Positions 20,846 through 29,603 are shown, numbered from the stretch's first letter. The stretch is DNA of 34,401 nucleotides from Octopus bimaculoides (GCF_001194135.2 NC_069008.1:8164189-8198589), one strand, 5' to 3'. Numbers and translations: made by a program. The notes: generated from the letters alone by a model not told the origin.

Positions 20846-23800
20846 ATGAAGCCATCGTCAACTGAGAGAAATCTTCAAAACATAAAATACAACTGGATCA
20901 ATGTGAATGATGACAGCGACAATAAGCTTGCAGAACTTGGTAACGATGACGACCTACTTGCGAATCCTAGCAGCCTTGGTCGGATGTTGCAACATATTCC
21001 TAAAGGTGAATACTCACAAACGCAGAGGGACGTTGAAATTTACTGCAGCAGCCAACAGTATATGTTGAAGGAATTTCTGACACAGAACGTCGGGACCAAA
21101 TTACAGATATCGTCTCAAATCGATGACAAAATTAACATCAACAATGCTACTGCCTTGCGTGATTGTTCGTGTCTTTACAAGTCACAAGAAAGCATTTGGC
21201 AGAATACTGACGAGGACCTTGTTGATACGGAGGAGGGAGAAGATGAGAGTAGAAGCCAGAACGCTAATTATGCTCCGACAGCCGTTGACTTTATTGACGA
21301 ACCTATCCCACATGTTTTGGACATTTCTTCCTGTGGTTCTACAAATCTGACTAACAGGGTTGATTTTAACTTTCCTAACTCATCGGGTGACTCTGAAATG
21401 TGCAAGGGTAGAAGCCCGGACTCAATCGAAATAACCGTACCAGCTTCTCAGCTCCCAAAACTTGCTTCGTGCTTTGTCACAAGCAATTTGGACTATACCC
21501 CTACATCCACTTTGGACTCACCGTTTAAGATATTTCAAGATTCACCAAAAGAAGATTCACCAAAGAAGAATACACCTAATCAGAACAGATTCGACTACGA
21601 GTCTTGTGATGGTTCTAAACTCGACTTCGACGAAGTTTGTGAGTTGCCATTTAGTGAAAGTAACGCCGAGGTGTGTAGTGATCAGAATTCATACTCATCC
21701 GGCATTACTGTGAGTAGTGATGATGAAAATACTTACGACAATTCACTCAGGCCAGACCGTTACTATAACAACAGATATTCACCTTCTGTCGATATGCTCC
21801 AGAGAAAGTATAATTTCGGTGAAACCGATAGTACTACTCCCACCCCTGATCTTTCAAATAATGTGCAGCAAGTTTCTTCTGAACGCCACCTGCAAAATGA
21901 ACGTAGTCACAAGCACCAACACGACGACCTCATTGTAGTAAATAAATCGGAAGCTTACAAAGAGGCCTTTGTATCGAGTCACGAGACTAGTATTAAGACA
22001 TGCGGTAGTATTACACCAGAAACACAACACCAATCTCAATTGTACAACATTTTAAAACCCACGCAGCATCCGGGTCTCAACCACTTATCTTTATTTCGCC
22101 CTCGAATCTCTCCTCCTCAGAGCGCCAATGTCGTTAACTGTGCTGCTACGCAGCCTTCGCTCCCTCAGTCTTTTGTTCGTAGTGACAAAGTCTCGGGTTG
22201 CAGTTTAACAGACGACGTCAAAAGAAACAGAAAGCCAGTGCTTAAAAACCTGAATTTTTTGGATGACCGACTAACCTATCCAGAAATAATAGACTCTTCA
22301 GAAAAAATAACCGAAGAGTATTTAGGCAGACCAGAAAACATCGGTAATATATTTGTAAAAATTCCTCAGCTTATAACAAATACAAACAAAGAAACATCTA
22401 CATCCAGTTGCACAAAAGCAAACACAACTATGAGCGCATATGCACTCACAACCACAGATCTAGATACAAACACAATCATAAATAAAAACATTGACCTGTC
22501 CACAGTTAAAACCGGCAAAAGTGAAGCACAATGTTGTCTGCCTAGATTTTCTACTACAGAAAAAATACAGAGATTTCCGAATCAAGTCGACAACTCCTCT
22601 CTGAACTCAGACCCAAGGGACTTTCGAACTAGCCCCAACAGGGACACTGTTACTGTTACAAGAGATACTGTTATTACAGGGGAAAATCGTAGCATTAACA
22701 AGCTCCCCGAAGAGAAAACCTGTCACAGCGGGAGCCGAATCGTGAAGGTTGTTCAGGGAGACGTCTCTGGAGCTCACCGAGACATTGACGAGACTCATGC
22801 AAGTGAAAAGTGTATTAATGATAATGAAATATCAAGTTCACTAAATATCGATGAGACGTATAATATGGAGGATGTATATAATGATACCACTTCATTATAT
22901 GGATCACAGGATGGTAAAGATATCAAATATGAACCTATTCGTCATAACCAATATACCGATAACACACATAACTGGGAAGATGCATGTAGAGTTATCAACC
23001 CCTTGTATGAAACATGGGATAGTAAAGATATCGAAAGCGAAAAACATACAAACCTTGGCTGCAACAATAAAAGTAGTCCCTCAAAAGATAGACATAAACC
23101 TAAAACCCAAATCGAGAAAGACAGAAGCGAAGAAAAGGAAGAAGAATCAGTTAAAAGCAGCAGCAGCAACAACAACAGCAACAATAATAATAATAATAAT
23201 AATGATGATGATGAAGATGGTGATGTTGATGAATGTAATAATGTAGTAGAAACCGAAGAAAAGTGTGACCGCGTTGATACTTTGTCTTTCAACGCAGAAT
23301 CTGGTGGCGGTGTTAATCATTCGGGTGTGTGTAGTCTGAAGATGGATAACAGAAACCACTTCAGAAACAGCGACAATGATTCATTAGCTGCGACCGTTGG
23401 TGAAAAGAATTATTCTGATGCTATCGTCCCGTCTTACTATACTGCAGCGGCTGTAGTAAGTGCGAGAACGGACGATTCTCAGATGTACGGTTCACAGAGA
23501 GAGGGGGGCGGGTACAGCAAGAGTAATAGTGGTAGCCACATCTTCGCAGACTTTGATTGCATGAATTCAGCCTCGCAAAACGAGACCTTTCATTTTAAAA
23601 CTCAGACAGAGGAAAACCAAATAGAAGAAGAAGAAGAAGAAGAAGAAGAAGAAGAAGAAGAAGAAGAAGAAGAAGAAGAAGAAGAAGAAGAAGGAGGAGG
23701 AGGAGGAGGAGGAGAACCTACAAAACCCCATACAAGCAACAATGTTTTAGCAGAAACAGGACCGAAGCATCAACCCATCAGCGAGCCATCTTATTGCAAT

Positions 23801-26800: not shown

Positions 26801-29603
26801 GAACCGAAGTGTCATCATGCTGAAGTTTCGTTAATGTGCAATGAATGCAACGGGAATGCAAACTTTTCTCACACAAGCAGTTCACAGACAAATATTGTTA
26901 ATGGCTGTAGTTACACCGATGAAAATGTTATCAGAAATGACGAGGAGAACCAAAGAAGACAGAAGGTCGAAGAGCATGAGAAAAACAATAAGAGTAACAG
27001 AAGAAAGCCAGAGTCGAAATGTCAGTCCGTTGTGAGTCCATCCAGACACAGAGATGTTAGCATACACGGATTACAGACGAATATATTGGACCGTAGCAGA
27101 AATGGTATTGTCCAAACGTTTTCGAATGCTGTCCTTAATTTCTGCAATAATGTCCATGCAGTCGGCAATGTAGAAGAAAAGGAAAACGAAACAGGGCATT
27201 CTTCAGCGAGGATAAACACAAAATATAGAGATCCAGGTGTATGTCGAAATCCGACGAACGCAGATTATTCAGACGTGTGTGAAAATTGGAATAACACAAA
27301 TTATGAAAACTCTTACATACGTGGAAACTCGGAAAATTTAAAACACAAAACATCAGAAGCAAATGGGAGTCAGACAAAAGCAAACCACAAAAACTCAGAA
27401 AAAGGAGATAAGAAACGAGAAGGAAAACTAGTAACGAAAATCCTGAAAGGCAATAATGGTTTAGCTGAAATAGAAACAAAACCTCACACCATTGAAGGTC
27501 ATTACGGAAATAATGCAGCCAGCGACAGAGCCAACATCTCTTACAGAAGCAATTCACAGATGGATAGATTTAATGGTGACACCAATAATGATGTCACTAA
27601 TGATCGATTTTATCCCCAAACTCAGGAAGACAAGGAAGACCGAATAAGCCAAAAAGAAGGAGGACATACGGAAACTGGTAATTGCAGCAGCTCTTTATCA
27701 AAACTTGGTTCTATATGTCAGTCTGTTGGTAATCCAGTTATTTGCAGTGATGCCATAAGTAGCTTGCAGACGAATATCCTAAATCCGATCAGTAATGACA
27801 TTGTCGAAAGGGGTTTAAATAACCTTTACTATTTTCGCAATAATGTCCCTGCTCTCGTCAGTGCACAAGATGACGAAACAAATCAGACCTCAAACAAGAT
27901 GAATGCAACAAACGGAAACTTGGATGTAAGTCGAACCACAACGCAAATAAGTTGCGATAACTCAAACGACATTGGGAAGTGGACGAATTCCATCTGCGAG
28001 AACTTAGAGGCACATGAAAATCGGGTGGACGCCAGTTGTGGAAACTGGAATGTAAATCGAAAACGAGCGAGTGAAAATTGTGAAAATTTGTACGTAAGTG
28101 GAGATCAACCGGGAAACACAGACGTAAGTGAACATTCTAGAAATTTGAATTACGTTTACTCAGATATAAGCGGGGATAGAGTGAATTTATATCGCGGGAA
28201 ATTAGAAAACGGAGATATAGAAGGAGAAGAAATGTCAATGAACATCCACAAAAACAACAACGATTTAGGTGAAACGGAACCGGAGCGCCATCCAAGAGAG
28301 GTTCCATTTCCATGCAATATTACAGTAAACGCGAAAGCAAACTTGTCTGAGGTAAACAGTTCAAAGGTGGATAGCTTCAACGGTTGCAGCGACGTTGTCT
28401 CAGATACTGGCCACGTCATTAAAGATGCAACTAGGGATGATCGATTTTATCTGAAAACCATGCCAGGCGATGAAGATCAAAGGGAAAAGGAAGTGGAAGT
28501 AGAATACGTGGAAACGTTTAATAGCAACAGTTCTTTAGCAAAACCAGAGTTAAGATGTCAATCCGTTGATAATTCAACTACAGATTCGCATACCACAGTA
28601 CATGAGTCACAGGAGGCTATCTTAAGCGACAACAACAACAGCAGCAAAGATGTCGTTGGACGTTCGAATGGCAGTCGAAATTCTGGCAGTACTGTCCCTT
28701 TTTTTAACAATGCAGAAGATAACTCACCAAAACAGTTCTCAAACGGAACTAACCCAAATTACGGAAACTCTGATGTAATTGGAAATTCAACAAATGGAAA
28801 TTACGGAAATTCGGAATATGAAGAAGATAAGGATCAAGAAATATCAAAGAAAATCGACAACGGCAACAGTTATTTAGGTGAAGCGCAACTTACGCATAAT
28901 TCCACGAAGGTCCCATTTCTGTGCAATGCTGCAGCAAGCAAGAAGACAGACTTTCCTTACACGAGCCGTTCACTGATTCATGACTCTCACGGCTGCAGCG
29001 ATGTTGTCTCAAATTATAACCACATTGAGGAAGATGTGGCCAGAGATGATCGCTTTTCTCCTAAAACCCAGGCAAACGAGGAGGCTCGAGGAGGTCAAAA
29101 GGAAGAAGAGTGTGTGAAATCCGACAACAGCAGCAACAGCTCTTTACCTACAATAAGTCCTGTTTGTCGGCCCGTGGCTAATCCACCTGTATGCAGTGAT
29201 GCCGTAAATTGCTCACAGAGCAGGAATGATACTGTCAAAAAGTGTTCGAACGACGTTCGTAATTGCTGCAGTAAGACTCTCTCTGCTCTCGACAATGCTA
29301 ACGATGGTGGCTTAACAGGAGAAATATCAAACAGAACGAATACAAATTGCAAAACCATGGATGTGGACGGAAATCGGACGAATGCAAATAACCTCGCTCA
29401 AGGTTTAAGTGGAAACTCGACAAATGCAAGTTACGGAATCTCAGACTTAAATAGAAATCACGCGAACATACCGCTGTTTCAGATTGAAAATCCCAATTGT
29501 TCCGATGATCAGCGTGTCCCTGCGGCCAATGACAAGATAGCGTCTTCCCCGATGATCCTCTCAATCGATCAGCAAGAATCGTTCTATTCTGATCTCCCAT
29601 CAA
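20846..29603 (+). CDS. Giant coding exon (about 2,919 aa) of an uncharacterised Asn/Ser/Asp/Glu-rich, probably disordered, tandem-repeat protein; gene likely continues 3'
   Basis: An 8.8-kb stop-free frame in AT-rich DNA. In-frame TGA at 20816-20818 precedes the ATG at 20846 (A at -3). Internal microsatellites are all triplets and there are no TE insertions. A strong donor AA|GTAAGT follows 29603 (phase 1). Read-through would stop at 29692 inside a SINE. No signal peptide, TM segment or known domain was recognised. Confidence 0.85.
23624..23713 (+). repeat. Coding (GAA)23(GGA)7 giving E23G7
   Basis: Counted directly; in frame with the CDS. Confidence 0.95.
23747..29500 (+). repeat. Eight diverged coding tandem repeats (609-822 nt; about 203-274 aa)
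   Basis: Anchors LxE.. at 23747, 24377, 25199, 25970, 26789, 27461, 28265 and 28874, all in frame. Each is followed by N[DG]C, DRFY, CQ[PS] and DIVExCSN-type motifs. Confidence 0.9.
25832..25915 (+). repeat. Coding (GAA)28 giving E28
   Basis: Counted directly; in frame with the CDS. Confidence 0.95.

Follow-up and report, generated by a model that had tools for sequence, protein, structure and literature searches.

What sort of protein carries eight copies of a Cys-bearing repeat of more than 200 amino acids (aa), one after another within a single exon? The question is raised by a locus of Octopus bimaculoides (GCF_001194135.2, NC_069008.1:8164189-8198589). The window, i.e. the whole stretch of 34,401 nucleotides (nt) analyzed here, is eukaryotic in character with CA/TA microsatellites, assembly gaps and transposon debris, and it contains one outstanding open reading frame (ORF) of 2953 codons on the plus strand at 20831-29692, which holds the entire array. 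A previous inspection of this DNA by a model (hereafter the sequence-only reading) had described the repeat as an unrecognised module. We consider, with about even confidence, that it is a disordered array of motifs, specific to its lineage, within a RAD51AP2-like protein of octopus, where it may serve as a multivalent docking platform. RAD51AP2 is the vertebrate meiosis-specific RAD51-associated protein 2 (Kovalenko et al., 2006, PMC1636435; Ma et al., 2022, PMC8754306).

The eight units are colinear inside one exon, as the sequence-only reading had proposed. Each anchor string occurs once, at nt 23747, 24377, 25199, 25970, 26789, 27461, 28265 and 28874, and the spacings of 630, 822, 771, 819, 672, 804 and 609 nt are exactly those reported before. 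The anchors described further downstream recur as well: R[NTD]D[RE]F[YHS][PL] is present in seven of the eight units, with a deletion at this place in unit 5, and [SN]R[NK][DG][ITV]V in six. The copies share 60-75% nt identity, which bears out the likeness at the DNA level and the intra-exon tandem duplication deduced from it. At the protein level, the units align over approximately 200 columns with 33-42% identity, and all 28 pairs are significant in unit-versus-unit BLASTP (E 9e-38 to 4e-5), while the invariant columns are only five (S33, D59, E70, V125 and N160). The conserved islands follow one another in a fixed order: L-x-E-T-E-P..H-P-x-E-V-P..C comes first, then SHTSSSQM..FNGC, DV-x-RNDRFYP, VESNN..CQ[PS]V and SQTN-x-L..SRNDIVE-x-CSN..FCNNVP..NAEE, and the last element is a 14-aa sub-repeat, NxNYGNSDVxGNxT, in variable number. 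Because this nested 42-nt sub-repeat varies in number and unit 3 contains a (GAA)28 run, the length of the units ranges from 203 to 274 aa. The synonymous divergence (dS) between paralogous units is ~1, with a ratio of nonsynonymous to synonymous divergence (dN/dS, or omega) of ~0.5, which puts the duplications at roughly eight times the age of the split between O. bimaculoides and O. sinensis.

The units all lie on the plus strand and are matched by a hidden Markov model (HMM) of the repeat. Unit 1 (23747-24376, 210 aa, HMM domain E=1.6e-92) starts with LAETGPKHQP, and unit 2 (24377-25198, 274 aa), starting with LIETEPTCQP, has extra 42-nt sub-repeats at ~24945-25065. Unit 3 (25199-25969, 257 aa) starts with LAETDPRCQP and carries (GAA)28.7 in its tail at 25832-25917, which is translated to poly-Glu. 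Four 14-aa sub-repeats are found at ~26478-26709 in unit 4 (25970-26788, 273 aa, starting with LVEMECHP), and the DRFYP motif has been lost by deletion from unit 5 (26789-27460, 224 aa, starting with LVETEPKCHH). Unit 6 (27461-28264, 268 aa) starts with LAEIETKPHT, unit 7 (28265-28873, 203 aa) with LGETEPERHP, the latter containing two adjacent 42-nt sub-repeats at 28758-28829, and unit 8 (28874-29497, 208 aa) with LGEAQLTHNS.

The module corresponds to no named domain, in agreement with the sequence-only reading: neither the ORF nor any unit taken singly matched a Pfam family, even at E<=10. A PDB sequence search with the ORF, the unit profile and the C-terminal peptides described below yielded noise only, and a contig search with the window ORF from the ATG at 20846 has no match on record. 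When a profile of the eight unit cores was run with HMMER against 1.84 billion cluster representatives, a single protein was retrieved (E=2e-203), XP_036371267.1 of Octopus sinensis, which is 893 aa long and annotated as 'putative uncharacterized protein DDB_G0282133', an NCBI name that rests on low-complexity similarity. At the sensitivity of HMMER, Octopus is the only genus in that library to have the module, so that the lineage specificity suspected earlier stands so far. As a sequence module the repeat is new; as a kind of element, a tandem repeat restricted to one lineage and lying in a disordered part of a fast-evolving nuclear protein, it is familiar.

We compared the window with the locus of this one species, O. 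sinensis (CM016888.1:2449069-2487573, referred to as L001), which is collinear with window 20350-30035 and 91% identical to it at the nt level in the exon. The giant coding exon spans 20846-29603 on the plus strand (~8.8 kb; 2919 codons and 1 base, ending in phase 1). The ATG at 20846 is the probable initiator because its immediate 5′ flank has a stop codon in frame and an indel of 1 nt between the species, and the ATG and the residues that follow are conserved in O. sinensis. At the other end, the splice donor CAA/GTAAGT at 29603/29604 (GTAAGT, 29604-29609, plus strand) is conserved in O. sinensis and used by the gene model XP_036371267.1; beyond it, the mechanically called ORF continues to 29692 as intronic sequence that reaches into a short interspersed nuclear element (SINE)-like element.

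The same eight units are present in O. sinensis in 1:1 correspondence, without gain or loss of a unit since the split, and the open frame of 2924 codons is conserved except for one (GAA)n length difference. Among the indels between the two species in the exon, 25 of 26 are multiples of 3; those in the flanking non-coding DNA are 1, 1, 14 and 4 nt and 2, 2, 9, 12, 1 and 27 nt long. The dN/dS of the whole exon is 0.71 (p=8e-5 against 1) and that of the array is 0.68 (p=4e-4 against 1), while the value of the N-terminal third, 0.81, is not significantly different from 1. In-frame indels and a dN/dS of ~0.7 indicate that the exon is translated coding sequence whose frame is strictly kept and whose aa sequence is weakly constrained. 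The sequence-only reading had named absence of the ORF from close relatives, or frame-breaking indels with dN/dS near 1, as arguments against a functional module. The ORF with its eight units, the indels and the array value below 1 all favor the module, but an omega of ~0.7 is high.

The number of 14-aa sub-repeats differs between the two species at window 25680, 25008, 25101 and 27304. Unit 3 of O. sinensis contains one extra 16-aa copy, SGEQTMRVNHGNLYV, and the poly-Glu run measures 28 residues in one species versus 17 in the other. Such copy-number differences suggest that the sub-repeat still behaves like a coding minisatellite.

These figures bear directly on the main rival of our interpretation, in which the array is a largely neutral disordered spacer, a minisatellite-like by-product in an exon where selection acts on the open frame needed for the C-terminal exons and on length and acidity, not on the motifs. 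We regard this as unlikely but deserving serious weight. The exon is no more similar to O. sinensis than the flanking non-coding DNA (90-92.5% identity), omega lies between 0.68 and 0.81, the sub-repeat and poly-Glu copy numbers vary between the species, and the units have only their five invariant columns in common. When alignment columns were classified leave-one-out, with conservation defined from the other seven units to remove ascertainment bias, omega was 0.47 at columns conserved among the other units, 0.73 in the intermediate class and 0.87 at variable columns; the lower omega at motif than at linker columns is a trend only (Fisher p=0.09), and this lack of significance is what a neutral spacer would give. 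In contrast, neutrality does not readily explain that units as old as dS ~1 all share the ordered motif set and remain pairwise significant, that the omega of the array is significantly below 1, or that no unit has been gained or lost since the species split.

The identity of the gene is suggested by what follows the giant exon in O. sinensis. XP_036371267.1 joins units 5-8 to two short 3′ exons, L001 22917-23006 and 28380-28505, which lie ~10 and 16 kb 3′ of the giant exon and encode KRHFNYKGNFRWKKPLEDCSVTVRTNSAET and AAIVDSPTMNIRKILRIGLSKRQKIPALHPYIKRRRIDDE, the latter up to the stop codon. The protein thus extends 70 aa beyond the giant exon and ends with ...LRIGLSKRQKIPALHPYIKRRRIDDE, also given as ILRIGLSKRQKIPALHPYIKRRRIDDE followed by the stop. 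The splice phases across the three exons are compatible, both junctions being phase 1. A tblastn search of the window with the two C-terminal exons gave no match; the window reaches only 4.8 kb past the giant exon.

The sole Pfam match of the C-terminal peptide is RAD51_interact (PF15696), with E=0.021 when the two exons are taken together and E=0.0088 (16.7 bits) when the last exon is used by itself, both scores falling short of the 25-bit cut-off; none of nine shuffled peptides matched this family. In human RAD51AP1, the contacts with RAD51 are made by Site-M (332-LRLGLSR-338) and Site-C (L345/H346), with Site-N (K..KWVPP) upstream (PMC12704761). The mutations R316A, L319Q, L328A and H329A of RAD51AP1, in the numbering of the short isoform, abolish RAD51 binding, and the equivalent residues L1134, L1143 and H1144 of RAD51AP2 are required, Y1146-L-K being conserved in addition (PMC1636435). 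Compared with RAD51AP1, the O. sinensis peptide L-R-I-G-L-S-K-R-Q-K-I-P-A-L-H-P is identical at R316, L319, L328, H329 and P330 with the same spacing. The RAD51-binding residues established as critical by mutagenesis and cryo-EM are all present in octopus LRIGLSKRQKIPALHPYIK, including the AP2-specific H-x-Y-[LI]-K (L-H-P-Y-I-K in octopus), and an R-W-K-K-P element lies 33 residues upstream of the motif, where Site-N would be expected. This comparison uses the peptide of the O. sinensis orthologue, not window sequence. In human RAD51AP2, a single exon accounts for 1083 aa and two short ones for the next 27 and 49 aa, the RAD51-binding region being encoded by the second of these, and the octopus plan of ~2920, ~30 and ~41 aa matches this architecture. 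Because every critical residue is found at the same spacing and the exon plan is the same, the gene is probably RAD51AP2-like, although we hold this assignment with restrained confidence.

Otherwise, the gene would be an octopus orphan unrelated to RAD51AP2, with a short motif that is due to chance or evolved independently, or with a model that joins unrelated exons. This we find rather doubtful. The Pfam score is sub-threshold, the match spans only ~18 residues, the gene structure is a single automated model with an odd junction, and its NCBI name, 'DDB_G0282133', derives from low-complexity similarity only. However, a chance motif would have to place every experimentally critical residue at the right spacing together with the AP2-specific YxK, and to do so at the very end of the protein, within a short final exon that comes after a giant one, the position that the motif occupies in human RAD51AP2. 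The compatible splice phases of the three exons and the failure of shuffled peptides to match also argue against it.

The array makes up the enlarged middle of a single, very large coding exon of an octopus gene, and its eight units arose by old tandem duplications within that exon. Taking the gene as RAD51AP2-like, we propose that the C-terminal peptide may anchor the protein on RAD51 filaments, as in RAD51AP1 and RAD51AP2, and the disordered array would then present eight copies of the same set of linear motifs, as a multivalent docking or phospho-regulated platform. The minimum role of the array may be that of a long acidic spacer. RAD51 binding, a partner for the repeat motifs and a role in meiosis or recombination are all inferred here from sequence. 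The multivalent scaffold and the long spacer that the sequence-only reading had listed among the possible functions both stay live options.

Several points weigh against this proposal. The array has no known RAD51- or DMC1-binding motif (no BRC FxTA, no [FW]xPP and nothing resembling Site-M). The motif-bearing exons are located outside the window, and one automated gene model links them to the giant exon; the junction of exons 2 and 3 reads ...AETAAIVD in this model, whereas the only canonical AG acceptor seen gives ...AETAIVD with one Ala codon. The RAD51_interact score of 16.7 bits is below the gathering cut-off of 25, and only positions 22-39 of the 39 in the profile are aligned. The comparison with vertebrate RAD51AP2 covers the C-terminal peptide and the exon plan, and RAD51AP2 has been described as vertebrate-specific; a literature search on RAD51AP2 in molluscs, or on the rate at which it evolves, turned up no relevant work. 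The lone out-of-frame indel of the exon, by which O. sinensis is 28 nt shorter in (GAA)n (L001 6480-6660, window 23600-23714), lies upstream of the array and places the N-terminal 930 codons and the array in different frames. Whether it reflects a genuine frameshift or a fault in the assembly, this difference probably explains the truncation of XP_036371267.1, which starts inside unit 5. Finally, the overall omega is high, the difference between motif and linker columns does not reach significance, and the need to translate the C-terminal anchor could alone explain the conservation of the frame.

A bolder version of the proposal, which we consider a long shot, makes the gene a genuine invertebrate RAD51AP2 orthologue whose eight-fold array consists of new partner-binding modules. 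Anchored on RAD51, the protein would form a multivalent platform with a function parallel to that of the eight BRC repeats of BRCA2 and would load or organise a recombinase, a chromosome-axis protein or a chromatin partner in cephalopod meiosis, possibly under control of ATM/ATR through [ST]Q sites. If the link to RAD51AP2 is true, a meiotic RAD51 cofactor thought to be vertebrate-only would extend to molluscs, and the plan of a giant exon with two micro-exons would predate the protostome-deuterostome split. It would also mean that an otherwise featureless giant exon has here turned into a regular array with identifiable motifs, a natural experiment offering testable handles in any species. 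If the link fails, what is left is a well-documented case of a weakly constrained, disordered protein with a tandem repeat peculiar to its lineage, a common phenomenon of modest interest.

The disorder assumed in the proposal is itself a prediction, and the sequence-only reading, which noted recurrent Cys residues, had considered a metal- or disulphide-linked structural protein. The array contains 14% Asn, 11% Ser, 17% Asp+Glu and 21% hydrophobic residues with a net negative charge, and all units fall below the Uversky boundary of the charge-hydropathy plot, on the disordered side. AlphaFold2 with the eight-unit alignment returned a mean predicted local distance difference test score (pLDDT) of 40.7, a predicted template modelling score (pTM) of 0.10 and no secondary structure, which is supportive but not decisive because the alignment is shallow. 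The units are thus predicted to be acidic, N/S/E/D-rich, intrinsically disordered segments.

A folded repeat domain stabilised by disulphides or metal is accordingly very improbable. It is true that six alignment columns have Cys in four to seven of the eight units, which upholds the earlier count of about six recurrent positions, and that 54 of 61 Cys are kept in O. sinensis against 83% identity overall. None of these columns is invariant, however, and there are no CxxC-type or other closely spaced Cys/His pairs; the share of hydrophobic residues (ILVFMWY) in each unit is only ~19-23%, and pLDDT and secondary structure are as low as stated above. The protein begins with MKPSSTERNLQ..., a hydrophilic N-terminus and hence no signal peptide, and the C-terminus of the orthologue is basic and resembles a nuclear localization signal. 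An invariant Cys/His framework, a confident fold and a secretory signal, by which Cys-stabilised repeat domains are recognised, are all missing, and the structural protein suggested before is thus unsupported.

The remainder of the giant exon has few landmarks. The N-terminal non-repeat region (20846-23622, plus strand) is polar and predicted to be disordered; Pfam found no match in it and the unit HMM no significant copy. This region contains 18 [ST]Q sites versus 7.9 expected, and the whole exon has 35 [ST]Q dipeptides versus 18 +/- 3.7 in shuffles, an approximately two-fold enrichment. [ST]Q is the ATM/ATR consensus, and an SQ is found within the conserved SHTSSSQM island in five of the eight units. 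Just before unit 1, Tandem Repeats Finder detected a microsatellite of (GAA)~24 followed by (GGA)~8 at 23623-23714 (plus strand), encoding ~23 Glu and 7 Gly; poly-Glu runs flank the array. The array is followed by an exon tail at 29498-29603 (plus strand), ...CSDDQRVPAANDKIASSPMILSIDQQESFYSDLPS, which is conserved in O. sinensis. The seven assembly gaps (N runs) of the window are located at 955-1251, 4714-4767, 6353-7109, 9802-9945, 19853-19952, 30036-30480 and 32579-32978. As no N run lies inside the giant exon, the repeat array is not an artefact of gap filling.

The neighboring sequence contains transposon remnants and interspersed repeats. A fragment of a PIF1-like helicase family ORF (PF05970, E=1.6e-10) is found on the minus strand at 12998-13351, in the upstream intergenic region, and is probably the remnant of a Helitron-type transposon. 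Another ORF, at 6100-6352 on the plus strand, ends with ...RGRGRPRKTWAEVVRQDLRTL and runs into an assembly gap. Its only Pfam match is a weak one to AT-hook, and we take it to resemble the C-terminal tail of the ORF2 proteins of invertebrate non-long terminal repeat retrotransposons. High-copy interspersed repeats are located at 5403-6071, 7554-7824 and 10890-11136, with many sites in L001; the 5403-6071 element has at least 10 copies with 73-83% identity within the 38-kb O. sinensis locus. The SINE-like element directly after the splice donor spans 29650-29735, and further copies lie at 2416-2493 and 2744-2827. Rfam and tRNA scans of the window gave no match.

That the array belongs to one of the giant-exon families already described, the BRC repeats of BRCA2, the MELT/SHT motifs of KNL1 or the Ki-67 repeats, is effectively refuted and to us scarcely credible, even though BRCA2 likewise carries eight repeats within a single giant exon, a superficial parallel, and the L-x-E-T and SHT strings recall the KNL1 motifs. 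For BRC (PF00634), there was no Pfam match, no F.[TS]A[SG] over the whole length of the exon and no [FW]xPP in the array. For the Ki-67 repeats (K167R), neither the ORF nor the units had a Pfam match. For KNL1, Pfam was likewise negative, the order of L-x-E-T differs from M-[ED]-[ILVM]-[ST], and the orthologue ends 70 aa past the giant exon with a RAD51-type peptide and no coiled-coil or RWD region.

Short of membership, the octopus gene can be placed beside several known systems. It resembles RAD51AP2 in having a giant exon and then two short exons, the last with a C-terminal RAD51-binding peptide (putative in octopus), and in that the remainder of the protein is without recognisable domains; it differs in that the octopus exon is ~2.7x longer (2920 versus 1083 aa) and that no vertebrate counterpart of the eight-unit array has been reported. 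With RAD51AP1 it shares Site-M (LRIGLSK in octopus, LRLGLSR in RAD51AP1) and the L-H-P of Site-C at the same 10-residue spacing from L to H, as well as a basic-Trp element, RWKKP 33 residues upstream in octopus and Site-N KWVPP 28 residues upstream in human. In contrast to the octopus gene, RAD51AP1 has many exons and its product is small (335-352 aa); the Site-N-like element of octopus is without PP, and there is no similarity beyond the C-terminal peptide.

The BRC array in exon 11 of BRCA2 is the closest parallel in possible working: eight modules of short motifs with disordered linkers, in one giant exon of a RAD51-associated protein. Unlike it, the octopus array has no BRC motif and no Pfam BRCA2 match and is not a member of that family, so that binding of a recombinase by the octopus units, conceived by analogy with BRC, would be pure conjecture. 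The MELT modules of KNL1 have other motif sequences, and the octopus array, which is followed by no kinetochore-type C-terminus, is not a member of that family either; what the two have in common is a tandem series of disordered units with short motifs in a fixed order, an evolutionarily labile number and length of units, and S/T motifs that can be phosphorylated.

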